A stretch of DNA of 64,000 nucleotides from positions 1,302,001 through 1,366,000 of the forward strand of contig OZ176060.1 in NCBI GenBank assembly GCA_964247055.1. The letters run 5' to 3'. Origin of the DNA: Paragordius varius. Lineage: Eukaryota > Animalia > Nematomorpha. Shown here piece after piece: positions 5,060-48,366 of the stretch. The first letter of the stretch is position 1; every line of letters starts with the position of its first letter. The notes under the pieces were generated by a model. The model had not been told where the DNA came from and made no database searches. It saw nothing but the letters and a program-made list of their open reading frames with translations. A program made the position numbers and the translations under genes.

Positions 5060-5602
5060 ATGGGTAGTTTTATGAGTATATTCCGTCGTTTGTTTGGGAC
5101 ACGTGAAATGCGTATTCTTATTTTGGGGCTCGATGGAGCTGGAAAAACTACAATTTTATATAAATTGCAAGTCGGTGAAGTGGTTACCACAATTCCAACC
5201 ATCGGTTTTAATGTCGAACAGGTGGTGTACAAAAATATTCGATTCCAGGTATGGGATTTGGGTGGTCAAACTAGTATTCGTCCATATTGGAGATGTTATT
5301 ATGCCAATACAGATGCCATAATTTATGTGGTGGATAGTGCAGATCGTGATCGTATGGGAATTTCAAAGCAAGAACTCTCGAGTATGCTTGAAGAGGACGA
5401 ACTTAAAAACGCACTTTTGTTGGTTCTGGCCAATAAACAGGATATCGAAGGTGCCCTCAAGCTAAGTCAAGTCGCAGAGGCTTTGGGCCTTAGTAATCTC
5501 AGAAACCGAACATATCAAATTTGTAAAACATCTGCTATAAAGGGTGAAGGTTTGACTGAAGCCATGGATTGGCTTGTGAACGCACTCCAAAATGTTAAAT
5601 AA
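5060..5602 (+). CDS. ARL1: ADP-ribosylation factor-like protein 1 (Arf-family small GTPase), 180 aa, single exon; true start is the ATG at 5060, not the GTG at 4988
   Basis: [31 protein letters not shown]...[17 protein letters not shown]...NKQD...TSA. Gly2 myristoylation site, P-loop, ARL1-type [14 protein letters not shown] switch II. TAA stop at 5600-5602. Confidence 0.97.
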
Positions 5603-20174: not shown

Positions 20175-20944
20175 ATGGAAGTTGATTTGAATAAACGAAC
20201 TAAAACCGGAAAGTTACTGAGGAATTATGAAATTAGTAAAGGAATCATGAGATATTCCAAATCTGCCATATTTCATCGAAGACGTCTTTTTGAAGATGGG
20301 GTTGTTCATAGTTCTCGACGTAAAGCTGATTGGGCTAAGCATCAACAAAAGCTGAAGGAAAAAACTGAAGCTGAGCAGAAAAAAGTGGTCAAAAAACCGA
20401 TTGGCGGAGAAAAAAATGGGAAAGAACGCGTTATTCATAAGAAACAGGTTTTTTACATCAAAATTAATGATTATTATACTTTGATACTTGATTTTTTATA
20501 CATTTGTTTAATTTATACTTTATTCTGTTACCTATTCACATATTTAAGAACCTCTTTGTCCAACTTTATTCCATTCAAATTTTGTAACCAATTTTTTAAA
20601 CAAACTTTTTTTTATCGCTATTACAAGTTTGTTAAAAACAACTAAGAAAGAAATTTAAAATATATTGTTTTATTATAATAAAAATGGATTTATTAATGAA
20701 TTCCATTTCAATACAAAATGTTAAATTCTAGGAATTTTTAAACTATTCTTTTGCCGGATAAGACAAAATTATTTGTTTAAAATTATTTTTTTCTTTTTGT
20801 AATCACTTTAAACAAAAAAAATTTTACATTATTTTTTTATAAAAATAAATTTAATTTTATTAACATTATTAATATTATCTAATTCTTTCTGAAAAATCAT
20901 TTTCACTCCAAATTAAAAATTAGAAACTATATGATTTTTTTAGT

Positions 20945-20988
<44 letters not shown>

Positions 20989-23900
20989 CTTTTGATAAAA
21001 TAACTTATTATTTTTTTACAATTAATTTTTATAAAAATAAATTTAATTAAAATTAAGAAACCATTTTAAAGTATAAAATATATGGTTTTTTACAATTGAT
21101 ATATATATTATATTTATATATTTTATATTTACTTTTGTATAATAATTCATATTTAATTATATTAATATTTTTTTTAAAAAAATCAATTAATTTATATTAA
21201 TATTTTTTAAAATTTAATTTTTTATTAATATTATTAAAAATTTTTTTATTAATATTATTTTTTAGCCACGTTCAATATCAACCGCACTGAAAAAGACGAA
21301 TTACATGAAAAGACTTAATCGAAAAAAATCTCAAATTAAGAAATTAAAACCCCTAAGATCCTCCTTGATTCCTGGAAAGATTTTAATTGTTTTGGCTGGT
21401 CCATATCGCGGAAAAGTTAGTTTTTTACAGTTTTTTTTTTTGAAAAATTTATGAAAAAGTTTAAAATTTATTTAAAAAAAGTTTTAAATTTATCTTTATA
21501 TTGATATAAAATTCAAAAAAATGGTTTAAAACTATAAAATTTGATAAAAAAGAAGAAATTGAAACCTCTAAGATCATCTCTGATTCCTGGAAAGATTTTA
21601 ATTGTTTTGGCTGGTCCGTATCGCGGAAAAGTTAGTTTTTTAATGTTTTTTTTTTTGAAAAAATTTATGAAAAAGTTTAAAATTTATTTAAAAAAGTTTT
21701 AAATTTATCTTAATTTATGAAAAAAATTCAAAAAAATGGTTTAAAACTATAAAATTTGATAAAATCAAGAAATTGAAACCTCTAAGATCATCTCTGATTC
21801 CTGGAAAGATTTTGATTGTTTTGGCTGGTCCGTATCGCGGAAAAGTTAGTTTTTTACAGTTTTTTTTTGAAAAATTTATGAAAAAGTTTAAAATTTATTT
21901 AAAAAAAGTTTTAAATTTATCTTAATTTATGAAAAAATTTCAAAAAAATGGTTTAAAACTATAAAATTTGATAAAAAATCAAGAAATTTAAACCTTTAAG
22001 ATCATCTCTGATTCCTGGGAAGATTTTAATTGTTTTGGCTGGTCCGTATCGCGGAAAAGTTAGTTTTTTACAGTTTTTTTTTATGAAAAAATTTATGAAA
22101 AAGTTTAAAATTTATTTAAAAAAAGTTTTAAATTTATCTTAATTTATGAAAAAAATTCCAAAAAATGGTTTAAAACTATAAAATTTGATAAAAAAGAAGA
22201 AATTGAAACCTCTAAGATCATCTCTGATTCCTGGAAAGATTTTAATTGTTTTGGCTGGTCCGTATCGCGGAAAAGTTAGTTTTTTAATGTTTTTTTTTTT
22301 GAAAAAATTTATGAAAAAGTTTAAAATTTATTTAAAAAAGTTTTAAATTTATCTTAATTTATGAAAAAAATTCAAAAAAATGGTTTAAAACTATAAAATT
22401 TGATAAAATCAAGAAATTGAAACCTCTAAGATCATCTCTGATTCCTGGAAAGATTTTGATTGTTTTGGCTGGTCCGTATCGCGGAAAAGTTAGTTTTTTA
22501 CAGTTTTTTTTTGAAAAATTTATGAAAAAGTTTAAAATTTATTTAAAAAAAGTTTTAAATTTATCTTAATTTATGAAAAAATTTCAAAAAAATGGTTTAA
22601 AACTATAAAATTTGATAAAATCAAGAAATTGAAACCTCTAAGATCATCTCTGATTCCTGGAAAGATTTTGATTGTTTTGGCTGGTCCGTATCGCGGAAAA
22701 GTTAGTTTTTTACAGTTTTTTTTTGAAAAATTTATGAAAAAGTTTAAAATTTATTTAAAAAAAGTTTTAAATTTATCTTAATTTATGAAAAAATTTCAAA
22801 AAAATGGTTTAAAACTATAAAATTTGATAAAAAATCAAGAAATTTAAACCTTTAAGATCATCTCTGATTCCTGGAAAGATTTTAATTGTTTTGGCTGGTC
22901 CGTATCGCGGAAAAGTTAGTTTTTTAAAGTTTTTTTTTGAAAAATATTATGAAAAAGTTTAAAATTTATTTAAAAAAAGTCTTAAATTTATCTTAATTTA
23001 TGAAAAAAATTCAAAAAAATGGTTTAAAACTATAAAATTTGATAAAAAGAAACAAATTGAAACCTCTAAGATCATCTCTGATTCCTGGAAAGATTTTAAT
23101 TGTTTTGGCTGGTCCGTATCGCGGAAAAGTTAGTTTTTTACAGTTTTTTTTTTGAAAAATTTATGAAAAAGTTTAAAATTTATTTAAAAAAAGTTTTAAA
23201 TTTATCTTAATTTATGAAAAAAATTCAAAAAAATGGTTTAAAACTATAAAATTTGATAAAATCAAGAAATTGAAACTTTCAAGATTTTTACAAGATTCCT
23301 GGAAAGATTTTAATTGTTTTGGCTGGTCCGTATCGCGGAAAAGTTAGTTTTTTAAAGTTTTTTTTTTTGAAAAAATTTATGAAAAAGTTTAAAATTTATT
23401 TAAAAAAAGTTTTAAATTTATCTTAATTTATGAAAAAAATTCAAAAAAATTGGTTTAAAACTATAAAATTTGATAAAAAGGTCCCTATCGAAAAAAAGTT
23501 AGTTTGCTTAAGTTTTTTTTGTAAAATGTTTAAAGTTAATTTTATCACAAAAAAGTTCAAAATTTATCTTTATGATATATAAAATTCAAAAAAATTGGTT
23601 TAAAACTATAAATTTGATAAAAAGAAACAAATTGAAACCTCTAAGATCATCTCTGATTCCTGGAAAGATTTTAATTGTTTTGGCTGGTCCGTATCGCGGA
23701 AAAGTTAGTTTTTTACAGTTTTTTTTTGAAAAATTTATGAAAAAGTTTAAAATTTATTTAAAAAAAGTTTTAAATTTATCTTAATTTATGAAAAAATTTC
23801 AAAAAAATGGTTTAAAACTATAAAATTTGATAAAAAATCAAGAAATTTAAACCTTTAAGATCATCTCTGATTCCTGGGAAGATTTTAATTGTTTTGGCTG

Positions 23901-26900
23901 GTCCGTATCGCGGAAAAGTTAGTTTTTTACAGTTTTTTTTTATGAAAAAATTTATGAAAAAGTTTAAAATTTATTTAAAAAAAGTTTTAAATTTATCTTA
24001 ATTTATGAAAAAAATTCAAAAAAATTGGTTTAAAACTATAAAATTTGATAAAAAGGTCCCTATCGAAAAAAAGTTAGTTTGCTTAAGTTTTTTTTGTAAA
24101 ATGTTTAAAGTTAATTTTATCACAAAAAAGTTCAAAATTTATCTTTATGATATATAAAATTCAAAAAAATTGGTTTAAAACTATAAATTTGATAAAAAGA
24201 AACAAATTGAAACCTCTAAGATCATCTCTGATTCCTGGAAAGATTTTAATTGTTTTGGCTGGTCCGTATCGCGGAAAAGTTAGTTTTTTAAAGTTTTTTT
24301 TTTGAAAAAATTTATGGAAAAAGTTTAAAAATTTATCTTAATTTAACTAAAATTGAAGAAATTATCTTAATTATTAAAAAATCCCAAAAAATTATCCTAA
24401 TTATTAAAAAATTCCAAAAAATTGTTTAAAACTATAAAATTTGATAAAAAGGAAGGTCCGTATCGCGGGAAAGTTAGTTTTTTTTTAACTTTTTGTGTGT
24501 TTAAAAAGGTAATTTTAGCAAAAAATTGATTTTATTATTATACTATAAAATTTGGAATATATATATATATATATTGATTTTTTTATTCGAAAAAAATTAG
24601 TTTCTAACTAATACCTAATTTTTTTTTCATCATAAGATTTTATCTAATTAATTCCCTTTTTGGACATTTTAAGATTAAGAAGAAAAAAAAAAACCAAAAA
24701 AATTACCCTCCTATATTTTTTTTTTACAATAAAATAAAAATATAAATGGTTAGAGGGGGCGCTTTTTTTCGTGGTATAAAAAGGCGTTTTCAATATTTAT
24801 CTATATATATATATATATATATATATACCATTTTTAGTTTAAATTCACCTTTAATAAAGAATTCAAATTCACCCTTAAACAATTCAAATTCACCCTCGAA
24901 CAATTCAAATTCACCCTTAAACAATTCAAATTCACCCTTAAACAATTCAAATTCACCCTTAAACAATTCAAATTCACCTTTAAAGAATTCAAAAATTCAA
25001 TCAAATAATAAATTATGAAGTTTCGGTTTGATTTAACTAACTCTCATCATTATAAATATGAAATATATAGTTTTATGGATAAAAGTTTATTATTATGTTT
25101 TCAGTATAATTTTGATTATATATACAAAGTGTTTCTTTTTTTTTGAAAATATATAATCTTAAAAATTATTACTTAATCTATTTTAGGGTAAATTCGGATT
25201 GTTTAAGGGTGATGAATTTGAATTGTTTAAGGGTGAATTTGAATTGTAATGGTATATAAATTTTTTTCAGTTATATTTATATTTATAAAAATATATTAAA
25301 ATATAGGTAATTTTTTATATTAAAATATAGGTAATTTTTAATCTTAAAAATTATTACTTAATCTATTTTAGGGTAAATTTGAATTGTTTAAGGGTGATGA
25401 ATTTGAACTGTAAATGGTAGTATATAATCATTTTATGTAAAAATACCGCCCTCTATTAAGTTGAGCAATAAAAATGTTTGAAAGAATTTTAAACCATGGT
25501 GTTAATTAAAAAAAAAGCTGTTTTTTTGAAAAAATTGCTGGTAATTTTTTTTTTGTCGAACAGAAATAATAAAATTTTATTGTTTTCACAACTAATAATA
25601 TATTTTTTTTAAAAAAAATATAAATTAAATGTTTAATGTTTAAATATGCTTTTTTAACAATATATTGTTATTAAACATGCATCGTTATAACATTAGATTT
25701 AACAGTTATTTCTGAAAACCATTAAACACATTTTATAAATGGAATGGATATTTCAATAACGAAAGAAACTATAGATTAAATTTTATTTGAAATATCCACA
25801 GTAGTATAATTAAAGTTCCATCCATGTGTATTTTAAGATTTTTTTCAAAAAATTTATTTAAACACAACAAAATTGTTGATTGATTGATTTAAAATATTTG
25901 TATAAATAATAATAATTACTATTACAAAAAATTTAAACTTTTTAGATATACCATTTACAATTCAAATTCACCCTCGAAAAATAAATTATGAAATTTTGGA
26001 TAGCTAATATAACTACAACTCATCATTATGATTTAATATATCTTTATGGCAAAGATTATTATTTAGTACCTTTTAGTATTATATTTAAATTTAAAACAAA
26101 TGTATATATTTTTTTTAAAATATATATAAGTAATCTTTATATAACATGATTTTATTTAAGGGTGAATTTTCTAATGTTCAAGGGTGAATTCGAATTGTTT
26201 AAGGATAGGGTGAATATGAATTGTTTAAGGGTAAAATTGAATTGTTCGAGGGTGAATTTTCTAATGTTTAAAAATTTAATTACAATTATTCAAAAGGTTG
26301 TTTAAGGATTAATTTTAATAATTCAAGGTTTAATTACAATTGTTTAAGGTTGTTTGTTAAGGATTAATTAATTTTAATTGTACGCGAGAGTAAATTTTAA
26401 TTATTCAAGGAAGGGTGAATTTCAATTATTCAAAAAATTTATATATGGAAATTTATACCCTTTCCTTAATTAATTATAAACTAAACTAAAATAATTTTAA
26501 TTTATTCCTTGATAACATTATTAATAACCAATATTAATCTTTATTAATTATCATTTTTTATTTTATTTGAAGGAGAATTTCAATTGTTCAAGAGTGAATT
26601 TTGAATCGTTCAAATGTGTTAAATCCAATTGTTTAAGGATGAATTTGAATTTTTTAAGGGTGAATTTGAATTATTCAATGGTTTAAATTGTTTAAGGGTG
26701 AATATGAATTGTTTGAGGGTGAATTTGAATTGTTTTAGGGTGAATTTCGAATCGTTCAGGTTGATTTTGAATTGTAAATGATATATATATATATATATAT
26801 ATATATTTATTTATAACTCTAAAAAAATCTTTATTAAACACATTATTAACCAATATTTAAACTTTTTTTTATTTGAATGTAAACTTCAATTGTTTAAGGA

Positions 26901-29900
26901 TGAATTTGAATTTTTTCAAGGAATATGAATTTTAATTGTTTAAGTTGAATTCCTTGATTATAAATTCAAAATAATCTTTATTGACTATCATTATTTTTAA
27001 GATTATTACTAATTTTTAATCTAAATATATATATTTTTCGAAATAATTGGCATATCAATATTAATACCCTTTTGCCCAAATTCCTTGATTATAAATGCAA
27101 AATAATCTAATTTACATTTTTTTCAACTTTTATTTTATTAATCTTAAAGAAACATGTAATTTATTGAAAAGTTCAATTATATAAGAGTGAATTGTAAATG
27201 ATAAATATATATTTATATTTATAAACTAAAATAATCTTTATAAACTAAAATTTAATCTTATTTCTTTATTATTTAAACCTTTTTTTTTTCAACACTTTAT
27301 ATTTTTTATTTTAGCGGGTCGTTTTCCTAGATCGTCTGCCCTCAGGATTATTACTCGTAACCGGTCCTTACCGGCTTAACGGGTGTCCCCTACGTCGGGT
27401 TCATCCTACCCGAGTTATAGCTACCACAGAGCATATACCCGGTTTCGAGCGGTCAGCTGTTTTTAGCGGTATTTTTAGCGGTCCCGAACAGCTGACCGAA
27501 TCAGCTGATGCTGAACGAGCCTTTTTCATGAGAAACGGCGGGGGAGGGGGAGACCGGAAAAAGACAAAGGGTAGACAAGAAGAAGATATCTTTGAAACAG
27601 CTGATGGGAAAAAGGTCAGTTATAGCGGAAAGCTTTTAAGAAATTTAATGAGTTTTTTTTGGGGGGGGGGAATTTTATAAACATATAATTTAAATAAATT
27701 TTGATTATTTTAAGAAATGATTAGAGAACGTTTATTAAGAAATTTAAGATTTTTTAAAGATTTTTTAGTCTTTTTTTAAAAAATTAAAGATTGATTATTT
27801 GTTTTTTAGTTTTCATTAGATTTTTTAATTTAAATAATTTTTGATTTTTTTAAGAATTGATTAAATAATCATAAATCATTTTTCAAAAAAATGATTCATA
27901 TATATATTTGAAACAGCTGATGAAAAAAAGGTCAGTTATAGCGGAAAGCTTTTTTTAGAAGTTTAAAGAAATCTAATGAGTTTAAAGAAAAAAAAGTTTT
28001 TTATAATTTATTTTATTTAGCTTATAAGAGAGGTTTTTTTTATATTTTTTTAATTTTTTTAAGCAATCATTAAATATTGAAGAATTTTTTGATTTAGTAA
28101 CTATAAGAGAGCGTTTTTTATAAAATTTAGATTTTTAGCTATAATTTTATAGTTTTTATACATAAAGATTGGTTTTTAAGAAATTAATGGTTTATTAAAG
28201 ATTTTTTAGTTTTCATAAGAGCGTTTTTTTAAGAAATTAAGATTTAGTTATAATTTTTGGGAAAATTTTTAAAAAATTTAATGAGTTTTTTTTTGGGGGG
28301 GGGGAATTTAGTAATTATCTAGATTAAGTTTAAGATTTTTTTATAATTTTTTAATTTTTTTAAGCAATGATTAAATATTAAATATTTTTTTGATTTAGTA
28401 ACTATAAGAGAACGTTTTTTTAAGAAATTAAAGATTAATTACACATTTTTTAGTTTTTATAATTACTTTTTAAACAAGAAGAAGATATCTTTGAAACAGC
28501 TGATGGAAAAAAGGTCAGTTATAGCGGAAAGTTTTTAAGGAATTTAATGAGTTTAAAGAAAAAAAAATTTTTGTTAGTATTTGTAATTTTTTTTGATTTT
28601 TGATTTATATAAAAACTTTTTTTAAGAAATTTAAGATTGAATAAAGATTTTTTCTATAATTTTTGTAAATTTAAAAAATTTAATGAGTTTTTTGGGGGGA
28701 ATTTAGATTTTTAATTTAAATATTTTTTTTAGTAAATATAAGATAGCGTTTTTTAAGGAATTTTAATAGATTAAACATTTTTTAGTTTTTATACATAAAG
28801 ATTGGTTTTTAAGAAATATAGTTTTTTATGAAATTTAAAAGATTTTTTGATTTAGTAACTATAAGAGAGCGTTTTGTAAGAAATTTAAATTTTTTGATTT
28901 AGTAAATATAAGAGAGCGTTTTTGTAAGGAATTTTAATTGATTAAACATTTTTTAGTTTTTATACATAAAGATTGGTTTTTAAGAAATATAGTTTTTTAT
29001 GAAATTTAAAAGATTTTTTGATTTAGTAACTATAAGAGAGCGTTTTTTAAGAAATTTAAAGATTGATTAAATAATTTTTGATTTAGTAACTTTAAGAGAG
29101 CGTTTTTGTAAGAAATTTTAATTGATTAAACATTTTTTAGTTTTTATACATAAAGATTGGTTTTTAAGAAATATAGTTTTTTATGAAATTTTAAAGATTT
29201 TTTGATTTAGTAACTATAAGAGAGCGTTTTTAAGAAATTTAAATTAAATCCAAATTTTAAAAGTTTTTTACGAAAATTAGATTTTTAGCTATAATTTTTT
29301 TAATTTAGTAAATAAATGGAGCGTTTTTCTAAGAAATTTAAATTTTTTAAAGATTTTTTAGTTTTTATAAATAAGTGAGAGCGTTTTTTAAGAATTTTTA
29401 AAGATTTTTTAGTTTTAAAAGTTTTTTACGAAAATTAGATTTTTAGCTATAATTTTTTGATTTAGTAACTATAAGAGAGCCTTTTTTTAAGAAATTTAAA
29501 GATTGATTAAATAATTTTTGATTTAATAACTTTAAGAGAGCGTTTTTGTAAGAAATTTTAATTGATTAAACATTTTTTAGTTTTTATACATAAAGATTGG
29601 TTTTTAAGAAATATAGTTTTTTATGAAATTTAAAAGATTTTTTGATTTAGTAACTATAAGAGAGCGTTTTGTAAGAAATTTAAATTTTTTGATTTAGTAA
29701 ATATAAGAGAGCGTTTTTGTAAGGAATTTTAATTGATTAAACATTTTTTAGTTTTTATACATAAAGATTGGTTTTTAAGAAATATAGTTTTTTATGAAAT
29801 TTAAAAGATTTTTTGATTTAGTAACTATAAGAGAGCGTTTTTTAAGAAATTTAAAGATTGATTAAATAATTTTTGATTTAGTAACTTTAAGAGAGCGTTT

Positions 29901-32447
29901 TTGTAAGAAATTTTAATTGATTAAACATTTTTTAGTTTTTATACATAAAGATTGGTTTTTAAGAAATATAGTTTTTTATGAAATTTTAAAGATTTTTTGA
30001 TTTAGTAACTATAAGAGAGCGTTTTTAAGAAATTTAAATTAAATCCAAATTTTAAAAGTTTTTTACGAAAATTAGATTTTTAGCTATAATTTTTTTAATT
30101 TAGTAAATAAATGGAGCGTTTTTCTAAGAAATTTAAATTTTTTAAAGATTTTTTAGTTTTTATAAATAAGTGAGAGCGTTTTTTAAGAATTTTTAAAGAT
30201 TTTTTAGTTTTAAAAGTTTTTTACGAAAATTAGATTTTTAGCTATAATTTTTTGATTTAGTAACTATAAGAGAGCCTTTTTTTAAGAAATTTAAAGATTG
30301 ATTAAATAATTTTTGATTTAGTAACTTTAAGAGAGCGTTTTTGTAAGAAATTTTAATTGATTAAACATTTTTTAGTTTTTATACATAAAGATTGGTTTTT
30401 AAGAAATATAGTTTTTTATGAAATTTAAAAGATTTTTTGATTTAGTAACTATAAGAGAGCGTTTTGTAAGAAATTTAAATTTTTTGATTTAGTAAATATA
30501 AGAGAGCGTTTTTGTAAGGAATTTTAATTGATTAAACATTTTTTAGTTTTTATACATAAAGATTGGTTTTTAAGAAATATAGTTTTTTATGAAATTTAAA
30601 AGATTTTTTGATTTAGTAACTATAAGAGAGCGTTTTTTAAGAAATTTAAAGATTGATTAAATAATTTTTGATTTAGTAACTTTAAGAGAGCGTTTTTGTA
30701 AGAAATTTTAATTGATTAAACATTTTTTAGTTTTTATACATAAAGATTGGTTTTTAAGAAATATAGTTTTTTATGAAATTTTAAAGATTTTTTGATTTAG
30801 TAACTATAAGAGAGCGTTTTTAAGAAATTTAAATTAAATCCAAATTTTAAAAGTTTTTTACGAAAATTAGATTTTTAGCTATAATTTTTTTAATTTAGTA
30901 AATAAATGGAGCGTTTTTCTAAGAAATTTAAATTTTTTAAAGATTTTTTAGTTTTTATAAATAAGTGAGAGCGTTTTTTAAGAATTTTTAAAGATTTTTT
31001 AGTTTTAAAAGTTTTTTACGAAAATTAGATTTTTAGCTATAATTTTTTGATTTAGTAACTATAAGAGAGCCTTTTTTTAAGAAATTTAAATTGATTAAAC
31101 ATTTTTAGTATGCATAAATAAAGATTGGTTTATATTTTACCTTATTATATTTATAACAAAAAATGTAAATTTTTAAGAGTAAGATTTATTTTAAACGATG
31201 GAATTGAATTACGATATTTTTAACACTCCAGGTGTTAATAAAAAAAGATTAGTTATTTGGGAAATTTTTAATAAATTTAATAAGTTTACGAATTTTATAA
31301 ACATTTAATTTAAATGGTTTTTTGATTTTTTTAAGACAGAAAGAATTATGTAGTTGATATATATATATATTTAATTTTGTTTTATTTAGTTATATTTTGA
31401 TTATATTATATTATGAGAATTATATATTTTATTTTATATTTCAAATTTTTAATAATAAAGATTTATTTAATAAATTAAAGTTGAAATAATATATGTGAGG
31501 GGTTGATTATTTAGGAAATTTTATTTTTAGGATGAATCATGATTTATTGAAATTTCATAAACAATTAATTTAAATGGTTGATTTTTTTAAGACAGAAAGA
31601 ATTATATTATTTGTTAAATTTAGTTATATTTTGATGTATATTATATGTTTCATAACTTAAATTTTTTAATAAAAAATTCATTAAATAGGTCGGAATACTA
31701 TATATAAGGTGTTGATTATTTTAGGAAATTTTATTTTTAGGATGAATCATGAATTTACTTTTTGTTATGTTAAAATTTATGACAATTGTCATTTATATTA
31801 TAATAATTTTAGTCGACAATTTTTAAAAAAAAAAATTTAAAAATTTTAAATATAATTATAAATATTATAAACTTTTTATCGAAACTTTTTTATTTTATTC
31901 ATATATGCACACAGAATTCATTATATATATAAAACTTAGGAAAATTAATAATTACTATATTTATAAATTTTGTAAAAACTTAAACTTATTTAATTTCATT
32001 TTTATATTTCAAAAAAATCAAAAAAGTTAATAAATTTTAAACACAATAAATTACATTTTTAAATTTAAAAAGTAATTACTATTTTCTTCATATTATGAAA
32101 ATTATTACTACCTCCATATTTAAATATTTCAAAAAAATTATAAAATTTTAAATATTATTTGAAAAAATTCAAAAAATTTTAAAAAAATTTAAAAAATTTC
32201 AAATATATTTCAAAAAAAAATAATTATAAATATTAAAAACTTTTTTTTTTATTCCACATACACACAGAATAAGGAACCGCTCCCAGAAGCCAGAAAAGAA
32301 ATTCAAAAAGTTATTGATAACCGAATCTTAGATCTTATAAATGGCGCTATAACGGAAAACCCCATGGATAGTCAATTTTTAAAGCGATACCTTAGCTTAC
32401 CTTTTGCCCTAAAGAATGGACAATACCCACATACCATGGTCTTTTGA
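20175..32447 (+). CDS. RPL6: 60S ribosomal protein L6 (eL6), 300 aa. Exons 20175-20447, 21266-21415, 27315-27614, 32268-32447
   Basis: All introns GT-AG, phase 0. Motifs [45 protein letters not shown]|[29 protein letters not shown], and C-terminal [19 protein letters not shown] match eL6. Confidence 0.95.
21416..24480 (+). repeat. Tandem array (about 214-bp unit) of the RPL6 exon-2 3' end + donor + intron start; 12 full and 3 partial copies
   Basis: GCTGGTCCGTATCGCGGAAAA|GTTAG ends at 21630, 21844, 22058, 22274, 22488, 22700, 22914, 23128, 23342, 23703, about 23918, 24278. Confidence 0.95.
24828..26781. mobile_element. TA-flanked MITE family with CCATTTACAATTCAAATTCACCC termini and variable 21-bp subterminal repeats (24828-25252, extra right end at 25417, 25951-26781); also 34113-34439, 36017-36283, 45173-45377 and partial arms at about 38090-38190 and 39320-39750
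   Basis: TATATA|CCATTTACA...TGTAAATGG|TATATA, inverted arms made of AATTCAAATTCACCCTTRAAC repeats around a shared AT-rich spacer. Confidence 0.7.
28790..31090. repeat. Intronic satellite in RPL6 intron 3: TAAGAGAGCGTTTTT subunits in a 795-bp higher-order repeat (about 3 copies)
   Basis: CCAAATTTTAAAAGTTTTTTACGAAAATTAG at 29250, 30045 and 30840. Confidence 0.85.
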
Positions 32448-33013
32448 AATTTAAGAAATGGAATGGAAAATTTTGAATTCTTATGAAAAAATTTGGAATA
32501 AAATTAATAAATACTACTATCTTATTGCATAATTTAATTAATTTTATTGGTTTTGATGTGTTTTTGATAAAAACTGCAAAATTTTGAATAATTTTCGTAT
32601 TTTATTGGTTTTGATGTGTTTTTCGTTAAAAAAACTGCAAATTTGAAACACTTTTTTTTATTAGAAAATTAATAAATACTTTAACTAATTTTGCATAATT
32701 TGATGAATATTGTTGGTTTTCATGTGTTTTTGAAAAAAAACTGCAAAATTTAGAATAATTTTCGAATTTTATTGGTTTTGATGTGTTTTTGATAAAAAAA
32801 ACTGTAAAATTTTGAATAATTTTTAAATTTTTTGGTTTTGAAGTGTTTTTGAAATTCTTCTGTTTAAAATTGACATTTTTTACCTTGAACGGTTTAAATT
32901 TTAGACTTTTTCTCATATATGAAAAACAAATATTTTAATAAATTTATTATTTAACCTTCTATTTTTCCAGAGTCTTTATATAAATGTTTTAAATTTAAAT
33001 AAAACTGAAAATA

Positions 33014-36000: not shown

Positions 36001-36630
36001 TAATTGCAAATATATACCATTTACAATTCAAATTCCCCCCTTAAACAATTCAAATTGAATAATCACTCTAAAAATAAATTATGTGTTTTCGGACAGCTCT
36101 AATAAAACTCTCATAATTAATATGAAATATATATCTTTATGGCGGCACATACTTTATTTATTTTACAATATAATATTAGTTTTAAAACAAATTTTTTTTA
36201 AAATATAGGATTAATTCTAAAAAAACCCATAATATTTGAGGGTAAATTTGTATTATTCAAAGGTGAATTTAAGTTGTAAATGGTATATATATGTATATAT
36301 ATATATATATAAATATTATGAGTATTTCCTTAAAAATCGACAGTTTTTATCTTGAGTGGTTCAAATTTTGGATATTTTGTAAAAAACGAATATTTTAAAT
36401 TATATAAATCTTTATTTCGGAGGGGGGATGTTTTCATTAAAAATGGAGACCTTTTTAACTCTGTAACGATTCAAAAATTTTGATTTTTTGGAAAAAAATA
36501 AAAATAGGTATATTATAAATCTGTTTTTTTTATCTTTAATAATCAAAAGTTGTTTTAAATTTAACTATAAATTGCCTGAAGCTAAAATTTTAAAATGGTA
36601 TTTTAGCTTACCTTTTGCCCTAAAAAATGG
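33014..36630 (+). repeat. Downstream copies of the 3' end of the RPL6 terminal exon (33014-33103, 33351-33440, 35209-35277, about 35883-35923, about 36597-36630, plus ATGGTCTTTT remnants)
   Basis: Match to 32358-32447 ([29 protein letters not shown]). Confidence 0.9.
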
Positions 36631-36696
36631 TTTAATTTAATAGAAAATTTAATTTCTAAATGAATTTAATGATATATATATATATATATATATATA

Positions 36697-39000: not shown

Positions 39001-39159
39001 TCAAATTCACTGCACATCAAAATATTTCCAAAACATAGCATAATATCAGCTATTATCAAATAATTTTATTTCCTATATTATTCATTTCAAAATTTATTTT
39101 TAATTTTATTTTTTCAAAAATAAAAAAAAAATAAATTTAATAATTTTCTGCTGAGTCAT

Positions 39160-42100
39160 TTATCTATTGGATTTTGCCACGCGTTCCAATTCATCTTTCT
39201 TCTTGATGGCATACGAATTGGAAGATCCCTAAAGCATATACAAATATATATATATATAGAAATTGAAAAAACTTAAAAAAAAAATTATTGTCAAGTAATA
39301 ACTAATATATAGTATTTGCAATTGAAATTTACCCTTGAACAATTGAATTTTACGCTTTAACAGTTTAAATTCACCCTTGAACACAATTCAAATTCACTCT
39401 TGAACAATTGAAAAACACCCTTAAATAGTTCAAATTCCCCCTTAAACAATTCAAAATCACCTTTAAATAGTTCAAATTCTCCCTTAATCAATAGGAATTC
39501 ACCCTTATATACTTAAAACCCTTAAATAATTTAAATATACCCTTAAACAATTAAAATTTACCGTTAAATAATTTAAATTCACCCTTAAACAATTCAAATC
39601 ACCCTTGAACACAATAGAAATTAACCCTCGAAAAATAAAAATTCACCCTAAACAATTGAAATTCACTCTAGAACAATTCAAATTAACCCTTGAACAATTC
39701 AAATTCACCCTTAAATACTTCAAAACCCTCTTAAACAATTTAAATCAAAATCAACCAAAATTATTATATTGTGTAGTGTTTTTGAATATCAAAAATTTCC
39801 TAAATTTTTTTATAAAAGTAAGAATACTATGTGTATAACAAAAAAATTATAATTAATGCTGCCATAAAGAAATACTTTATTATATTAATGAAAAAGAGTT
39901 ACATATTAACACATCAATCAAATAATGATATATTTTTCAAAGAGTAAATCAAATAATTAATTAATGGTAATAATATTTTAATAAACCCCAAAGCACCCCC
40001 CTGGAAAATTATTGTTTCTGAAGAAAGGAGACCCCTATTCTGAAAAAAAAACCATTTAAACAATATAAACACCTATTTTTTGTCATTAAAAATACTGAAA
40101 ATTTTTCACTGATAGGATGATACTTAAAACGACTAAAAAACTTGTAAAAGCATCAAACTCACTTTAGAAAAACCCAGAAAATCCTATAAAAAACTAAATT
40201 TGTTTTAGAGACAACCGCCGTAAACATAATCCATATGTATATATATATTCAAAAAAACCCAAAACAAATATTCTAGATTATTATACAATGGATAAGTTTT
40301 GAACAGTAAAAACTTTTCTAGACAACTAAAAACGCTTCAAACACCACTATAGATGTCAAAATCACTTTAGAAAAACTTTGGAAATCGCTCTAGAAAAGGC
40401 CCAAAAATTTTTGATGTTGAAACCATCGCCGTAAAATTATTTTTGGCATATAATAGCTAATCTTTTTAAGATATTCCTTTGCGACATTAACTTTCCAGAG
40501 TTCTAAGAAAACCTTTTTTGTCATCAAAAAGTTATAAAAACGACTCAACAACGACGCAAACACTACTATATAGACGTTAAAAATGCTCGGAAATCCTGAA
40601 TAAAAAATTTTGATGTTAAAACCATCGCCGTAAAATTATTTTTTTATAATTTCCAATTCTTTTTAAGATATTCGTTCTTGCGATATTAACTCTCCAAAGT
40701 ACTAAGAATACCTAGTTGTCACCAAAAACCTCTATTATAAAGCTTCAAACACTACTATGGACGTCAAAAATGCTCTAAAACCCAGAAAATCGCTCTAGAA
40801 AGGTCCACCCAAAAAATTTTTTTAAACCATCGCCGTAAAATTTTTTTGGCATATAATTTCTATGAGGCATGCAAATAAAACAATCACCTTAACTTTTGCC
40901 GTATATTAAACTATAATGAACTTTCCAGAATATTAAGAAAACCTTGTTGTCACAAAATACTTCTTTAGACAACTAAAAACGACTTAAACACTACTATAGA
41001 CGTCAAAATCACTCCAGAAAAACCCTGGAAATCGCTCTAGAAAAGGCCCAAAAAAATTTATTGAAACCTTCTTAGTAAACAAAATGAATACACATATCTG
41101 CCCACAAAATTAATGTAAAATCTAGTCTCGAACAGTAAAAACTTCTCTATTAAAACTACCGACTTAAACATTCGTAAAAATTATCATAAATGCTCTAAAA
41201 CCCTGGAAATCGCTCTAGAAAAGGCCCAAAAATTTTTGTTAAAGCCATCGCTGTAAAATTCTTAATCCATGTAAAATTTCTAATTTTTTTTGTTCGATCT
41301 CCATACCTTTGCCGCATTTATAAGTTCATCGGCCAAGCATTCAGCAATACTTTTTTTATTACGAAAAGCTGATTCACGCGCCTAAATAAATGCCTTAAAG
41401 CAATAAAAACCTTCTAATTTTGCATAGTTTTCTTTAAAACGAAGAAAGATTCTCTAGAAAAACGCTAAAAACACTTCAAAAACTACTATATAAGTAAAAA
41501 ATGCTCTAAAACCCTGGAAATCGCTCTAAAAGTCTTAAATTTAACCGCCGTAAACGAAATCAATACACATATCTATAAAATACACAAAAGATTCTTGAGT
41601 AATAAAAAATTTAGTCTCGAACAGTAAAAACTTCTCTCTAGAACTAAAAACGCTTCAAACACTACTATAGACGTCAAAAATGCTATAAAACACTATAAAT
41701 GCTCTAAAACCCAGAAATTCACTCTAGAATAGGCCTAAAAATTTTTTGTTGAACCATCGCCGTAAAATTCATTTTTGGCATATTATTTCATATTCCTTCA
41801 TCATACCTTTGCCGCATTTATAAGTTCGTCGGCCAAGCATTCCGCAATAGTTTTTATATTACGAAAAGCAGATTCACGCGCCCCCGTAATGTAAATTGCC
41901 ACATTAACTCTCCAGAGTACTAAGAAAACCTTGTTGTCACCAAAAACTTCTATTAGAACTAAAAACGACGCTTCAAACACTACTATATAAGTAAAAAATG
42001 CTCTAAAACCCTGGAAATCGCTCTAAAAAACGTCAAGTTTTTGTAGAGACAGCCGCTTTAAACAAAATCCATATCTATACAAAACCAGAACAAAAGATTC

Positions 42101-45039
42101 TTGATTAGTATACTATCTAGTCTCGAACAGTAAAAACTTCTTTCTCTAGACAATTGAAAACACTTCAAAAACATTTAAAGACATCAAAAATGTTCTAAAA
42201 TCCTGGAAATCGCCCCAGAAAAGCCCGCCCAAAAATTTTTGTTAAACAATCGCCGTAAAATTTTTTTCCACATAAAATTCACCATACCTTTGCCGCATTT
42301 ATAAGTTCATCGGCCAAGCATTCCGCAATAGTTTTTATATCACGAAAAGCTGACTCCCGGGCGCCAGTAACCAGCATATAAATTGCGACATTAACTCTCC
42401 TCAGGGGGGAAACATCGAAAATTTCTCTAGAAAAAGAACTAAAAACGCTTCAAGAACTACTTAAGACGTCGAAAATGCTCTAAAACCCAGGAAATTGCTC
42501 TAGAAAAGCCCGCCCAAAAAATTTTGTTAAACCATCGCCGTAAAATTTTTCTTCATAATCTTTTTTGATTCAAATACCTTTGCCGCATTTATAAGTTCAT
42601 CGGCCAAGCATTCAGCAATAGTTTTTATGTTACAAAAAGCAGATTCTCGCGCCCCTGTACGCAGCATATAAATGGAGACATTAACTCTCTTTCAGTGTAA
42701 AATTTCAAAAATTTCTCTAGAAAAAAACTAAAAACCCTTCAAAAACTACTATTGATGTCAAAAATGCTCAAAAACCCTGAAAATCGCTCTAGAAAGGCTC
42801 GCCCAAAAATTGTTTAACCATCGCCGTAAACATAATCAATACACATGTCTAAAAAGAACCTAGAACAAAAGATTCTTGATTATTATGCAATCAATCTTGA
42901 ACAGTAAAAACTACTATATAAACCTCAAAAATCTCTAAAACCCTGGAAATCGGTCTAGAAAAAGCCCAAATATTTTTGTTAAACCATCGCCTTAAAATTT
43001 ATTTCATATAATTTCCAATCTCCATAACTTTGCCGCATTTATAAGTTCGTCGGCCAAGCATTCAGCAATAGTTTTTATGTTTCGAAAAGCTGACTCTCGC
43101 GCCCCTGTAACCAACATGTAAATTGCGACATTAACGCTCCTTCAGTGTAAAATTTCAAAAATTTCTCTAGAAAAAAACTAAAAACGCTTCAAGAACAACT
43201 TAAGACGTCAAAAATGCTTTAAAACACTAAAAATGCTCTAAAACCCAGGAAATCGCTCTGGCCCAAAAATTTTTGTTAAACCATGCCGTAAACGAAATCA
43301 ATACTCATTCTTAAAAACTCAGAACAAAAAATTCTTGATTAATCAATGAGTATTAAACAGTAAAAACCTAGACAACTAAAAACGACTTAAACACTGCTAG
43401 AGACTTTAACCCTGGAAATCCCTCAAGAAAAGGCCCAAAAATTTTTGTTAAACCATCGCCGTAAAATTCTCAATCCACGTGAAATTTTTTCAAATTCTTT
43501 TTTTGATTCAAATACCTTTGCCGCATTTATAAGTTCATCGGCCAAGCATTCCGCAATAGTTTTTATGTTTCTGAAAAGCTGATTCACGCGCGTCTGTAAC
43601 CAGCATGTAAATTGCGACATTAACTCTCCTGAGAACTAAAAAAACCTTGTTGTCACCAAAAACTTCTCTAGACAACTAAAAACGACTCAAAAATTACTAT
43701 AGACGTCAAAAATGCTCTAAAACCCAGGAAATCGCTCTAAAAGTCTTAAATTTAACCGCCGTAAACGAAATCAATACACATATCTATAAAATACACAAAA
43801 GATTCTTGAGTAATAAAAAATTTAGTCTCGAACAGTAAAAACTTCTTTCTAGAATTAAAAACGCTTCAAACACTACTATAGACGTCAAAAATCGCTCTAA
43901 AACACTAAAAAATGCTCTAAAACCCTGGAAATCGCTCTAGAAAAGGCCAAAAACTTTTTGTTTAAACCATCGCCGTAAAATTCATTTTTGGCATATTATT
44001 TCATATTCCTTCATCATACCTTTGCCGCATTTATAAGTTCGTCGGCCAAGCATTCCGCAATAGTTTTTATATTACGAAAAGCAGATTCACGCGCCCCCGT
44101 AATGTAAATTGCCACATTAACTCTCCAGAGTACTAAGAAAACCTTGTTGTCACCAAAAACTTCTATTAGAACTAAAAACGACGCTTCAAACACTACTATA
44201 TAAGTAAAAAATGCTCTAAAACCCTGGAAATCGCTCTAAAAAACGTCAAGTTTTTGTAGAGACAGCCGCTTTAAACAAAATCCATATCTATACAAAACCA
44301 GAACAAAAGATTCTTGATTAGTATACTATCTAGTCTCGAACAGTAAAAACTTCTTTCTCTAGACAATTGAAAACACTTCAAAAACATTTAAAGACATCAA
44401 AAATGTTCTAAAATCCTGGAAATCGCCCCAGAAAAGCCCGCCCAAAAATTTTTGTTAAACAATCGCCGTAAAATTTTTTTCCACATAAAATTCACCATAC
44501 CTTTGCCGCATTTATAAGTTCATCGGCCAAGCATTCCGCAATAGTTTTTATATCACGAAAAGCTGACTCCCGGGCGCCAGTAACCAGCATATAAATTGCG
44601 ACATTAACTCTCCTCAGGGGAGAAACATCGAAAATTTCTCTAGAAAAAAACTAAAAACGCTTCAAGAACTACTTAAGACGTCGAAAATGCTCTAAAACCC
44701 AGGAAATCGCTCTAGAAAAGGCCTAAAAATTTTTGTTAAAGCCATCGCCGTAAAATTCTCAATCCACGTGAAATTATTTTCATGTTCTTATTTGATTCAA
44801 ATACCTTTGCCGCATTTATAAGTTCATCGGCCAAGCATTCAGCAATAGTTTTTATATTACGAAAAGCAGATTCACGCGCGCCTGTAACCAACATGTAAAT
44901 TGCGACATTAACTCTCCTCAGGGGCGAAACATCGACGGCTTGTCGTCTAACAGTTCCAGCTCGTCCAATCCGGGTGGAATCTTCGCGTGGACCACTGTTA
45001 CTAATGGCATCAACCAGAATTTGCAATGGGTTCTAAGGA

Positions 45040-45070
<31 letters not shown>

Positions 45071-48000
45071 AGATTATAAGAAAATTCACCCTTAAACAAT
45101 CAAATTCGTCCTTGAACAATTCAAATTTTATGAATCATTTACAATCAACTTAACCCTAACAATTTAAATTTACCATTTACATTTCAAATACACCTTTAAA
45201 CGATTTAATTTCATTCTCAAACGATTCAAATTCACCCTTAAACAATTCAAATACACCTTTGAACGATTTAATTTCATTCTCAGACGATTCAAATTAACCC
45301 TTAAACAATTCAAATTCACCCCCCTAACTAAAATATATGTTTTTTAAGATTAAAAACTATATTTGAACTGTAAATGGTATATATATATATATACATAAGA
45401 AATTTTATAAATATATTTAAAATTACGCTTGAAATAATTTAAAACCGCAAAAATTATTAAAACAGCCACCAAGATTATCATGAAGCCCCCTTTTTTTAAT
45501 TCTATAAGCAAAAAAAGTATAAGAAAAAAGAGAAAATTGAATAAATATGGCATGGACTTTAAATAAGATATTTATGATAATTTTCGCGTAGCTGCTTTGA
45601 TAATTTTTGGGGTTTTTACTTATTTTGAAAATTTTATAAACCATTTACAGTTCAAATTTCACCCTTGAAAAAATATTTTGAAACGTATGCTCTCAACAAT
45701 GTATACACACCATTAGTTTTTATTTTTTTATAAACTTAAAAATAATAAATTTCGGATATTAAGGTACTATAAAAACAACTTTTTGTTTAAACCCCCTGAG
45801 GTGGCTTAGAACTTCTTCTTGCAATATACCTTACCTTGAAATTAGGTTTTAAACCCAAATAATTAATAAAATATCCAATTTTAAATTTCATGTCAAACAA
45901 TATCAGGAAACTCATGGAGATTTAGTAACAAGCGTAAATTTTTTTACAAAACCCTTGAAATTAGTGTCAGAATCCATAAAGACCCTTTCAAAATTATTGT
46001 TAAAAAAATTTAATTTATGTAAGACTAAAAAATTTATCTTAAAGATCCCAAAAACTTATTTAAATCTTTCAAGGCTTAACTTGTAAGTTATCAAACATAT
46101 ATCAAAGTTAACAGAATAATTTAAAAAGGGTCATATTCAACATTACATAAAACCATTTATAATCATAAACAAATTAATTTGGGAACAACTAAAGTCCTTT
46201 ACAGAAAACTTTAAAATTTATTCAAAACTTTAAGAGAACTTTAAAAAGTTTTAAACTTTCAAAAAAACTAAAAATTTGAAACCTGTCCAGTTAAAAGGAA
46301 TATAATTTCAAACCTGTGTCTTACAATTTAAAACAAATTTAATTAGGGACAACCTAAAGTCTTTAGTGATTGAAAACTTTTAAAGAAATCAAATTTATTC
46401 AAAACTCTAAAAAAACTTTAACAAGTTTGAAACTTTTCAAAAAAACTAAATTTTATTAAAACTCCAGTTAAGAGGAATATAATTTCAAACGTATGTTCCA
46501 CAATTCATAAAGCCATATTTGAAATTAGAAACAAATTTAATTAGGGACAACTAAAGTCTTTAGTGATTGAAAACTTTTAAAGAACTCAAATTTATTCAAA
46601 ACTTTAAAAACTAGCTTTAAATCAAACCTGTCCAAAAAATAATTTAAAAAAAATTTTAAATACCCAAAAAACTTTAAAAAAAGTTAAATTTTGTTGTTTC
46701 AAACACTGCAACTTTAAATGAAAATACAAAATCCTAAAAAAACTCTAAGAGAACTTTAAAAAGTACTAAAATTTTCCAAAATCATTAATTTTTAAACCTG
46801 TCCAGTTAGAAGGAATATAATTTCAAACGTATGTTCCACAATCCGTAAAACCATATTGAAATCAAAAACAAATTTAATTAAGGACAAATAAAGTCTTTAA
46901 TGGTGGAAAACCTCAAATTAATTCAAAACTCTAAGAAAACTTTAACAAGTTTTAAACTTTTCAAAAACTAGCTTTATTAAAAAAAACCTGTCTAGTTAAC
47001 AGAAATAAAATCTGAAACGTATGTTCAACAATTATAAAGCCATATATGAAATCAAAACAAATTTAATAAAGAACAAATAAGGTCTTTTTGATAGAAAACT
47101 ATAAAAAAACTCTAATTTATTCAAAACTCTAAGAGAACTTTAAAAACTTTGAAACTTTTCAAAAATTAAATTTATATAAAACCTGTCCAGTTAGGAGGAA
47201 TAAAATTTCAAACGTATGTTCCACAATTCGTAAGGTCAATTTGTAATCAAAAACATATTAGATTAAGGAAAACTTTGAAAGAACTCATATTTATTCAAAA
47301 CTCTAAGACTTTAAAAAGTTTGAAACTTTTCAAAAAAAACTAAATTTTATAACCTTAAAACCATATTGAAAATCAAAAACAAATTTAACAACAACTAAAG
47401 TTAATGGTGAAAAACTTTGAAAGAACTCAAATTTATTCAAAACTCTAAGTAAATTTTAAACATTTCAAAAACTATCTTATTTAATCAAACATGTCCAGTT
47501 AACAGAAATTTAATTTAAAAAGTATGTTCAACAATTCGTAAAGCCACATTCGAAATCAAAAACAAATTTTATTATAATCTACTAAAGTTTTTTTGTGAAA
47601 AACTTTAAAAGAACCCAAATTTATTCAAAAAAAGAACTTTGAAAAGTTTTAATCAAAAAGTAAAAAATAAACCTGTAAAATTAACAGGAATAATTTCAAA
47701 CATATGTTCCACAATTCATAATTTGAAATCAACAAATTTTAAGAACAATTAAAGTGTTTAATAGTGGAAAACTTTAAAACTCTAAGAGAACTTTAAAAAG
47801 TTTTAAACTTTTCAAAAAATTTAAGTTTTAAAAAAGTTAAAATTAAAAAACTTGTCCAGTTAACAGAAATATAATTTCAAACGTATGTCCCACAATTCAT
47901 AAAGCCAATTTAAAATCAAAAACAAATCTAATTAAGGAAAACTAAAGTGAAACTCTAAAAGATTTAAAACTCTAAAAAAACTTTTTAAAATTTAAATTTT

Positions 48001-48366
48001 AAAAACCTGTCCAGTTAAGAGAAATATAATTTCAAACGTATGTTCAACAATCCGTACAGCCATCAATTTTTTCCCATTATTCCGACCATGCATCATTAGG
48101 GAATTAACCAAGCGTTCAACTATGTGACATTGAGCTTTTCGAAATTTTTTAACCGCATACCTCCCAGCTGTATGAGGCAAATATTTTGCATGCTTATCCT
48201 TGATTGCAATGTAATCTACGAGGCCAAGATCAGAAACTTGAACATCGTAAGGATTCCATTTTCCAAATAGCTTAATTTCTGGTAATTCCGTAGCAGATAA
48301 ACCACCTCCATTGTTTCCAATTTGAATCATATTATCTTCTTCAGTCATAATTTCTTCGTCAGCCAT
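39160..48366 (-). CDS. RPS5: 40S ribosomal protein S5 (uS7), 218 aa. Exons 48366-48007, 45032-44805, 39228-39160
   Basis: EIKLFGKW...[34 protein letters not shown]...LTGQ|[42 protein letters not shown]...ADELINAAK|[26 protein letters not shown], phase 0 introns. Confidence 0.97.
40480..44804 (-). repeat. Array of RPS5 exon-2 3' end + donor copies in intron 2 (8 clear copies plus remnants)
   Basis: ...GAACTTATAAATGCGGCAAAG|GT copies with plus-strand donor edges at 44501, 44020, 43516, 43028, 42578, 42288, 41807 and 41307; remnants at about 40900, 40690 and 40490. Confidence 0.95.
46280..48006 (-). repeat. Array of RPS5 exon-1 3' end + donor copies in intron 1 (8 copies plus fragments)
   Basis: [12 protein letters not shown]|GT-like copies at about 47852, 47673, 47491, 47183, 46988, 46798, 46463 and 46283. 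Confidence 0.9.

Follow-up and report, generated by a model that had tools for sequence, protein, structure and literature searches.

Exon-end arrays in the introns of two ribosomal-protein genes of Paragordius varius diverge mainly at silent positions, possibly through exchange with the functional exons

In a 64,000-nucleotide (nt) stretch of the genome of the nematomorph Paragordius varius (assembly GCA_964247055.1, contig OZ176060.1, positions 1,302,001 to 1,366,000 of the forward strand; hereafter the window, with positions counted from its first letter), the ribosomal-protein genes RPL6 and RPS5 are accompanied by arrays of partial copies of their own exon 3' ends. These copies differ from the functional exons largely by silent changes, and the bias follows the genetic code. 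We tentatively favor the explanation that the arrays serve as a reservoir of silent variants, with the functional exon acting as a sieve through the exchange of short tracts, and we rate this account at somewhat short of an even chance of being right. The evidence for the pattern is given first, followed by the points for and against this account and its competitors.

Exon ends are copied downstream of the functional exons

BLAST (Basic Local Alignment Search Tool) searches with the final 150 nt of each exon returned 39 same-strand downstream copies, of which 15 derive from RPL6 exon 2, two from RPL6 exon 3, five from RPL6 exon 4, nine from RPS5 exon 1, and eight from RPS5 exon 2 (Table 1). 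The same searches found no copies of RPL6 exon 1 or RPS5 exon 3. An earlier reading made from the letters of the window alone (the sequence-only reading) had proposed same-strand exon-end copies with mostly silent differences, and this is confirmed far beyond chance. Each copy starts within the exon, runs through the donor (or, for RPL6 exon 4, the stop codon) and continues into sequence homologous to that downstream of the functional exon, so that only the 3' 18-135 nt of an exon are carried. The units lie head to tail at a constant period, each joins an exon end to the adjoining non-exon sequence, and the real exon is unit 1, as in a junction-spanning tandem array. Tandem Repeats Finder reported a 214-bp period for the RPL6 exon 2 array (10+ units with 94% matches over 21333-23479) and periods of 290 bp and ~195 bp in the RPS5 introns. 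Decayed or partial units of the RPL6 exon 2 array lie at 23259, 23480, 24055, and 24455, and in RPS5 intron 2 a ~670-nt segment at 44670-43997 is repeated nearly identically at ~42460-41790.

A GT directly follows the exon-like end in 31 of the 34 donor-bearing copies, and the first two RPL6 exon 4 copies reach the stop codon, with TGA changed to TAA in both. Well-kept copies encode unchanged amino acids. Most older copy classes carry defects, including a frameshift (43515), a GT>TT change (43027), a 6-nt deletion (44019), and three replacements (42577), and some RPS5 exon 1 copies contain stops. All five arrays hold exon 3' ends only and are located downstream; no exon 5' edge is copied in its upstream intron. 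This one-sidedness may arise because splicing would use an upstream pseudo-acceptor and so disrupt the mRNA, while downstream pseudo-donors are tolerated.

Differences between copies and exons follow the genetic code

Pooled across all copies, codon differences numbered 181 silent to 57 replacement. The hand counts of the sequence-only reading (6:0, 9:1, 7:1, and 5:1) were reproduced, and the consensus RPL6 exon 2 copy differs from the real exon by six silent and no replacement changes. Since many copies are recent duplicates of one another, we counted each distinct variant once, which gave 61-63 silent and 48-50 replacement variants and a clear departure from the neutral expectation (P = 6e-12 against 25% silent). 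When the unique variants were scored in the true frame, the silent-to-replacement ratio was 63:50, compared to 26:83 and 18:92 in the two wrong frames. Among third-position changes, the ratio of transitions to transversions was 10:24 in four-fold codons and 14:4 in two-fold codons (P = 0.0013). Together, the frame controls and the contrast between four-fold and two-fold codons indicate that the filter follows the genetic code and not merely a mutable third position.

The same two controls rule out third-position hypermutability as the source of the bias. A/T-biased decay is rejected as the source of the silent changes by their symmetry, as 22 and 25 silent differences run in the two directions between G/C and A/T, and the spectrum of changes rules out GC-biased conversion, CpG decay, and mutation resembling repeat-induced point mutation. 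Conversion that restored replacement sites was likewise set aside, since at the frequency needed it would have wiped out the silent differences as well. A comparison of exon-part and flanking divergence within a recent 1.35-kb internal duplication, in which the flanks seemed more diverged than the exon parts, was discarded; a sliding window revealed one ~670-nt segment that is identical throughout, which voids the comparison.

For RPS5 exon 2, the proportions of differing silent (pS) and replacement (pN) sites between the real exon and its copies were 0.23 and 0.017, with a ratio (omega) of 0.07. Comparisons among the copies gave a pS of 0.28, a pN of 0.033, and an omega of 0.12. In the older RPS5 exon 1 array, the real exon and its copies differ with a pS of 0.32 and a pN of 0.073. 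We also considered whether the real exon itself might have evolved faster at silent sites, for example to escape homology with the copies. Faster silent evolution would leave intron divergence far below the silent divergence (Ks), contrary to what RPS5 intron 2 shows, and homology escape is contradicted by perfect matches of 36-51 nt to copies that are still present. Gordionus, a related genus discussed below, is too diverged to polarize the changes informatively.

The bias is concentrated in variants found more than once. Variants present in at least two copy classes were 23 silent to 6 replacement (10:0 in RPS5 exon 2 alone), compared to 35:44 among singletons (Fisher P = 0.002). Of the replacement differences, 28 place A/T in the copy where the exon has G/C and five do the reverse (P = 7e-5), the mark of unfiltered decay where the genome is biased toward A/T; the GC content of the window is 17-34%. 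The copies thus decay as dead DNA, and overlaid on this decay are many silent differences that have already been filtered at the protein level.

The sequence-only reading had also held that amino-acid changes lie far from the donor and that the copies are constrained by use, most strongly near the donor. Silent and replacement changes did not differ in their distribution along the copies (P = 0.25 and 0.77). All types of difference are about two times rarer in the 3' half (36, 40, 17, and 20 by quartile), and this depletion is a gradient of identity, not of constraint. Given the lack of a constraint gradient, the near-neutral and A/T-directed private changes, and the defects of the older classes, the claim of constraint by use could not be upheld.

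Tracts apparently common to copies and functional exons

Several features of the units suggest exchange between the copies and the functional exons. Two RPS5 exon 2 copies (43515 and 42577) have the exon 3' end and the first 20-130 nt of the intron in common with the real unit, while the other classes diverge from the real unit immediately after GTAT. From codon 16 on through the intron, the real RPL6 exon 2 unit departs from its array at just one silent site (CCA/CCG) and one small complex intronic change. Between codons 24 and 17, five of eight codons differ, all silently, which places a sharp breakpoint near codon 16/17. In RPS5 exon 2, 22 of 28 informative site pairs fail the four-gamete test.

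DNA run X1 supplied a further piece of evidence in a 199-nt contig (21177-21375) that extends from the upstream intron across the unique segment of RPL6 exon 2 into the beginning of the repeat, with six mismatches to the window. The listed mismatch, 21337 T>C, gives the array state ATC, and the remaining five must lie at most 30 nt from a contig end, where the five array-type states sit. X1 contigs just upstream show zero mismatches, and in unique intron DNA the window is only ~0.65-0.8% apart from runs X1 and X4. The contig appears to link the unique 5' part of RPL6 exon 2 with at least one array-type silent state, and probably with six. Alleles of the real exon thus probably differ by a silent block taken from, or common to, the array, within near-identical haplotypes. 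Since the differing exon tract stands beside nearly identical intron, the divergence is better attributed to exchange with the array than to old haplotypes.

These observations bear on two proposals of the sequence-only reading. The first, that recombination between an exon and a copy makes chimeric in-frame exons, is likely to hold in view of the tracts that run through the donor, the breakpoint at codon 16/17, and the X1 contig; its corollary of constraint through use is not supported. The second, that divergent alleles are captured, survives in that exon alleles differing by silent blocks are probable; the old haplotypes it would call for fail, given flanking intron that is identical or ~0.7% different.

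We also noted that, over RPS5 intron 2 (41200-44757), run X4 yielded no contigs covering 43727-44323 and that other parts of the array were 2-5% mismatched, compared to ~0.8% for unique intron. Array content differs between individuals, which suggests that the arrays turn over rapidly.

A reservoir of silent variants and a selective sieve

The account that we tentatively favor would begin with lineage-specific tandem duplications spanning an exon's 3' boundary, creating units in which an exon tail is joined to its donor or stop and to the first part of the sequence that follows. The copies would be by-products, not expressed as coding sequence, and would decay under the A/T-biased mutation of the genome. 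Short tracts would be swapped repeatedly between the copies and the single functional exon by unequal crossing-over or gene conversion, and any tract entering the functional exon would be screened by selection on the ribosomal protein. Only silent variants would then pass through the exon to other copies and alleles, and replacement changes would stay in the copy in which they arose. Because such a sieve would pass silent variants only, the copies would come to look synonymously recoded, and alleles of the real exon would differ by silent blocks. The direction and rates of exchange, and the capacity of a sieve alone to produce the pattern, are the parts of the account that we infer.

We examined this account in simulations in which the copies exchange with a selected exon as their hub. 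With 15-30 reservoir units, these gave a Ks of 0.2-0.33, a replacement divergence (Ka) of ~0.025, and an omega of 0.08-0.24, compared to observed values of 0.23-0.28, 0.017-0.033, and 0.07-0.12, respectively. With seven units, the simulated ratio of shared silent to shared replacement variants was ~5:1, and 3.8:1 was observed. All-against-all conversion that included the selected exon was rejected with a simulated omega of 0.6-1. Among the models tried, the hub model fits best, but only under special assumptions.

A number of points weigh against the sieve. With the 7-8 units actually present, the hub model gives an omega of 0.23-0.6, which is two to four times too high. The fit also needs exchange between copy and exon to be far more frequent than exchange between copies; when exchange between copies was simulated at one tenth of the rate between copy and exon, shared replacement variants were already as common as shared silent ones, and we know of no mechanism for such an exon-centered topology. 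Divergence in RPS5 intron 2 poses a further difficulty. Across the RPS5 exon 2 units, the first 75 nt of intron diverge by 0.21 with 17% gap columns, and the exon part has 0.8% gap columns. Silent-site divergence (0.28) is about equal to that of the intron once gaps are added, replacement sites differ by 0.03, and indels occur ~20 times less often in the exon part than in the intron. Taken alone, this pattern looks like long-term purifying selection on the copies. In addition, the silent states of RPL6 exon 2 in the window (TTA, CCC, TCC, TCC, and TTG) are absent from every copy on this haplotype, a run-length permutation test for conversion tracts in RPS5 exon 2 was not significant (global P = 0.5), and among the six mismatches of the X1 contig only that at 21337 is explicitly listed.

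Alternative explanations

The units might instead stem from unequal crossing-over with a deeply diverged functional gene copy (an allele, homeolog, or paralog) and have decayed only briefly since. This would explain why Ks is close to intron divergence with Ka far lower, as between functional genes, and why private changes resemble decay. It requires at least six deep lineages for RPS5 exon 2 alone, and again for each array, and it fits poorly with unique intron that differs by only ~0.65-0.8% across three haplotypes. The probable X1 allele, moreover, departs from the window over a short exon tract next to upstream intron that is identical, a sign of tract transfer instead of an old haplotype. 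We consider such capture unlikely.

A second possibility is that the copies are used directly and are under purifying selection themselves, with the germline arrays left unhomogenized. Regular or programmed deletion between exon and copy, whether somatic or tied to a life stage, might yield expressed chimeric exons, or the copies might serve as repair templates. A regular DNA-level event of this kind, whether 'intron shortening' or templated repair of a fragile and highly transcribed exon end, would bring copy sequence into the expressed gene in each generation. Direct use accommodates the divergence of the RPS5 exon 2 units (silent 0.28, close to an intron value of at least 0.21; replacement 0.03; indels excluded from the exon part), the silent bias between copies (omega of 0.12), the donors kept in 31/34 copies, and the stop kept as TAA in two terminal-exon copies. 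It also uncouples exposure to selection from germline homogenization, which exchange models find hard to do. Most older classes are nevertheless individually broken by a frameshift, a lost donor, stops, or two or three replacements; private changes are near neutral and A/T-directed; and the contrast between shared and private variants (P = 0.002) speaks against uniform selection. Array depth in X1 and X4, two runs of unknown tissue, is not depleted relative to unique intron DNA, and no report of DNA elimination in Nematomorpha was found in the literature searched. We therefore give little credence to direct use, including a regular event in each generation. If it were true, it would constitute a new kind of genome rearrangement in animals, with intronic partial exon copies under protein-level selection.

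One-way stamping, in which the functional exon overwrites parts of the copies that then decay neutrally and the silent differences reflect the exon's own later evolution, would account for the sharp 5' boundaries that separate decayed from intact stretches within units. As derived, it should yield an omega of 0.5 or more for copy against exon and a higher value between copies, compared to the observed 0.07 and 0.12, and star simulations with weak flow from copy to exon gave an omega of 0.4-0.66. Under stamping, silent divergence should also fall far short of intron divergence, and in RPS5 intron 2 it does not. On these three grounds we rejected it as the sole cause, and overall it is very unlikely.

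An equally poor prospect is the germline form of the sequence-only reading's first proposal, in which exchange exposes the copies to selection so frequently that replacement alleles arising in them are removed from the population. In its favor, chimeric exon alleles probably exist (X1), and ribosomal-protein genes are dosage-sensitive. With an exchange rate g ~ mu/Ks and a Ks of ~0.25, however, Ne*g would be about theta/(4*Ks), or ~0.01 for a theta of ~0.7%, which would be far too weak for selection to act, and private replacement changes are not depleted.

The sequence-only reading had also raised the splicing of copies into mRNA, as cassettes or alternative exon ends that are translated. Donors are intact in 31/34 copies, and some RPS5 exon 2 copies have an in-frame AG with 8-9/14 upstream pyrimidines and an open frame. 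The copies nevertheless lack the exon's 5' part, no AGGT is present at homologous points for a seamless swap, the real exon has no internal donor at the corresponding point, a strong in-frame acceptor was found in 0/32 copies, and copies of the terminal exon end without a donor. If included, a copy would repeat 25-50 residues of a conserved ribosomal protein or bring in stops. Splicing-in thus finds no support in the sequence and appears highly improbable. An assembly artefact, with haplotypes or reads stacked in tandem, can almost be dismissed: such repeats are hard to assemble and array content differs between X1 and X4, but short-read X1 contigs match the array exactly at 41320-41490, 41996-42213, and 43230-43451 (0 other letters), so that the arrays are not an assembly error, and stacking errors would not follow the genetic code.

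Relation to known systems and to Gordionus

The closest parallels are CYP21A2/CYP21A1P and GBA1/GBAP1 in humans, in which a gene and a nearby pseudo-copy evolve in concert by gene conversion and unequal crossing-over. As there, non-functional copies in cis would swap short tracts with the gene, alleles would carry copy-derived blocks, and harmful transfers would be selected out. Here, by contrast, the copies are fragments of single exons with their boundary, they form arrays of as many as 15 units within an intron of the gene they derive from, and the visible outcome is a store of silent variants and not disease alleles. Silent donor cassettes, such as the chicken immunoglobulin pseudo-V arrays, Neisseria pilS, and the trypanosome variant surface glycoprotein genes, are programmed systems that create protein diversity. 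They resemble the present arrays in being promoterless partial coding copies near an expressed gene that keep coding sequence open and, on the favored account, donate tracts; the present copies differ in encoding the same amino acids, which leaves no protein diversity, and no program is apparent.

Like mutually exclusive exons arising by tandem exon duplication, the arrays place head-to-tail duplicated exon sequence and donors inside one gene, but their units lack the exon 5' part and a matching acceptor/donor pair and cannot replace the exon. None of the units amounts to a whole exon whose acceptor and donor are usable and of compatible phase, as a cassette exon would need. In Rogers-type intron creation, or internal gene duplication, a single tandem duplication across an exon-intron boundary creates or extends an intron. 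The breakpoints here are similar, one in the exon and one in the adjoining intron, and the first donor preserves the mRNA in the same way, but that model is silent on arrays and on silent-biased divergence. Recursive splice sites and their associated RS-exons (recursive-splicing exons) also place donor-like sequence deep within long introns; in the present case coding sequence, not a polypyrimidine-AG, abuts the GT, and the constraint has codon periodicity instead of a splice motif. We found no description of the phenomenon in the literature searched.

We compared both genes with their counterparts in the horsehair worm Gordionus sp. m RMFG-2023 (L001:10001-10758 for RPS5 and L002:6001-11696 for RPL6). 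Intron positions are in common, with one additional intron in Gordionus RPS5, and no exon-end copies were found in either Gordionus gene. Gordionus introns measure ~45 nt in RPS5 and ~0.2, 1.65, and 2.9 kb in RPL6. The absence of arrays from Gordionus indicates that they arose in the lineage of P. varius and that they explain much of the intron growth there; the pattern illustrates how RPS5 introns grew from ~45 nt in a related genus to 3-5.5 kb.

Gene models and other features of the window

In a database protein search, the closest match of the RPS5 exon 1 protein was that of Gordionus sp. m RMFG-2023 (95% identical), and the RPL6 N-terminus matched the same species only. The protein searches returned no match from the species of the window itself, and exact look-ups of its open reading frames gave none either. 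RPL6 exon 3 has a GC content of 48% amid surroundings of 17-24% (38% for Gordionus exon 3), and its product contains a five-Gly run and an unusual insert.

Table 1. Positions of the RPL6 and RPS5 exons and of their downstream copies in the window
Feature	Position	Strand	Description
RPL6 exon 1	20175..20447	+	ATG to AAACAG|GT; Pfam Ribosomal_L6e_N 2.2e-09; without copies (BLAST self-match only)
RPL6 exon 2, functional	21266..21415	+	Acceptor ttttag|, donor AAAA|GTTAGT; 50 in-frame codons; repeated part is the final ~83 nt
RPL6 exon 2 array	21333..24480	+	Exon 2 end, donor, and ~130 nt of intron 2 start; 12 long and 3 short copies
RPL6 exon 3	27315..27614	+	48% GC; Pfam Ribosomal_L6e
RPL6 exon 3 copies (n = 2)	27902-27969, 28471-28554	+	Exon 3 end, donor GTCAGT, and intron 3 start; BLAST 88%, 95%; donors kept
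RPL6 exon 4, terminal	32268..32447	+	Stop TGA 32445-32447; Pfam Ribosomal_L6e 2.4e-09
RPL6 exon 4 copies (n = 5)	33023-33106, 33350-33442, 35199-35276, 35874-35917, 36585-36630	+	
RPS5 exon 1	48366..48007	-	120 codons; donor CAG|GTTTTT; PF00177 matches
RPS5 exon 1 copies (n = 9)	47907..45669	-	Exon 1 end and donor within intron 1; period ~195; older, more decayed array
RPS5 exon 2, functional	45032..44805	-	76 codons; acceptor ccttag|, donor AAG|GTATTT
RPS5 exon 2 copies (n = 8, six distinct classes)	44635..41303	-	Last 25-44 codons and donor within intron 2
RPS5 exon 3, terminal	39228..39160	-	From translation; without copies

RPL6 intron 3 contains three ~795-bp tandem repeats (28713-31106) built from 60-, 171-, and 184-bp subunits, and exon-free partial copies of the intron 3 start (27627-27693) flank this block at 28260-28327, 28670-28722, and 31242-31315. 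A 21-bp satellite, CAATTCAAATTCACCCTTAAA, occurs in both orientations in the introns of RPL6 and RPS5 (39319-39745, 24855-24993, 26575-26775, 34119-34199, 34374-34433, and 45082-45321). Its word depth in X1 and X4 reaches ~2.4-3 million, compared to ~300-400 for single-copy DNA, which makes it a major satellite of the genome. Open frames on the + strand opposite the RPS5 exon 2 tail and its copies (42531-42668, 43391-43579, and 44740-44895) probably arise incidentally from the codon bias of a conserved gene. Elsewhere in the window, an intronless Arf-family GTPase gene (5060-5602, + strand; Pfam Arf 7.5e-77), ARL1-like by eye, had no partial copies around it.

Implications

Up to 15 identical donors following a single exon will lead gene finders and RNA-seq aligners to annotate these genes wrongly. 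If the sieve reading is true, intronic arrays of exon tails would store silent variants and feed them back into essential genes, and exon alleles would differ by ~20% over 30 nt beside identical neighboring intron. Estimates of Ks, codon usage, and polymorphism would then be distorted in this phylum. The arrays would also represent a natural case in which selection at one site shapes many unexpressed sites purely by recombination.

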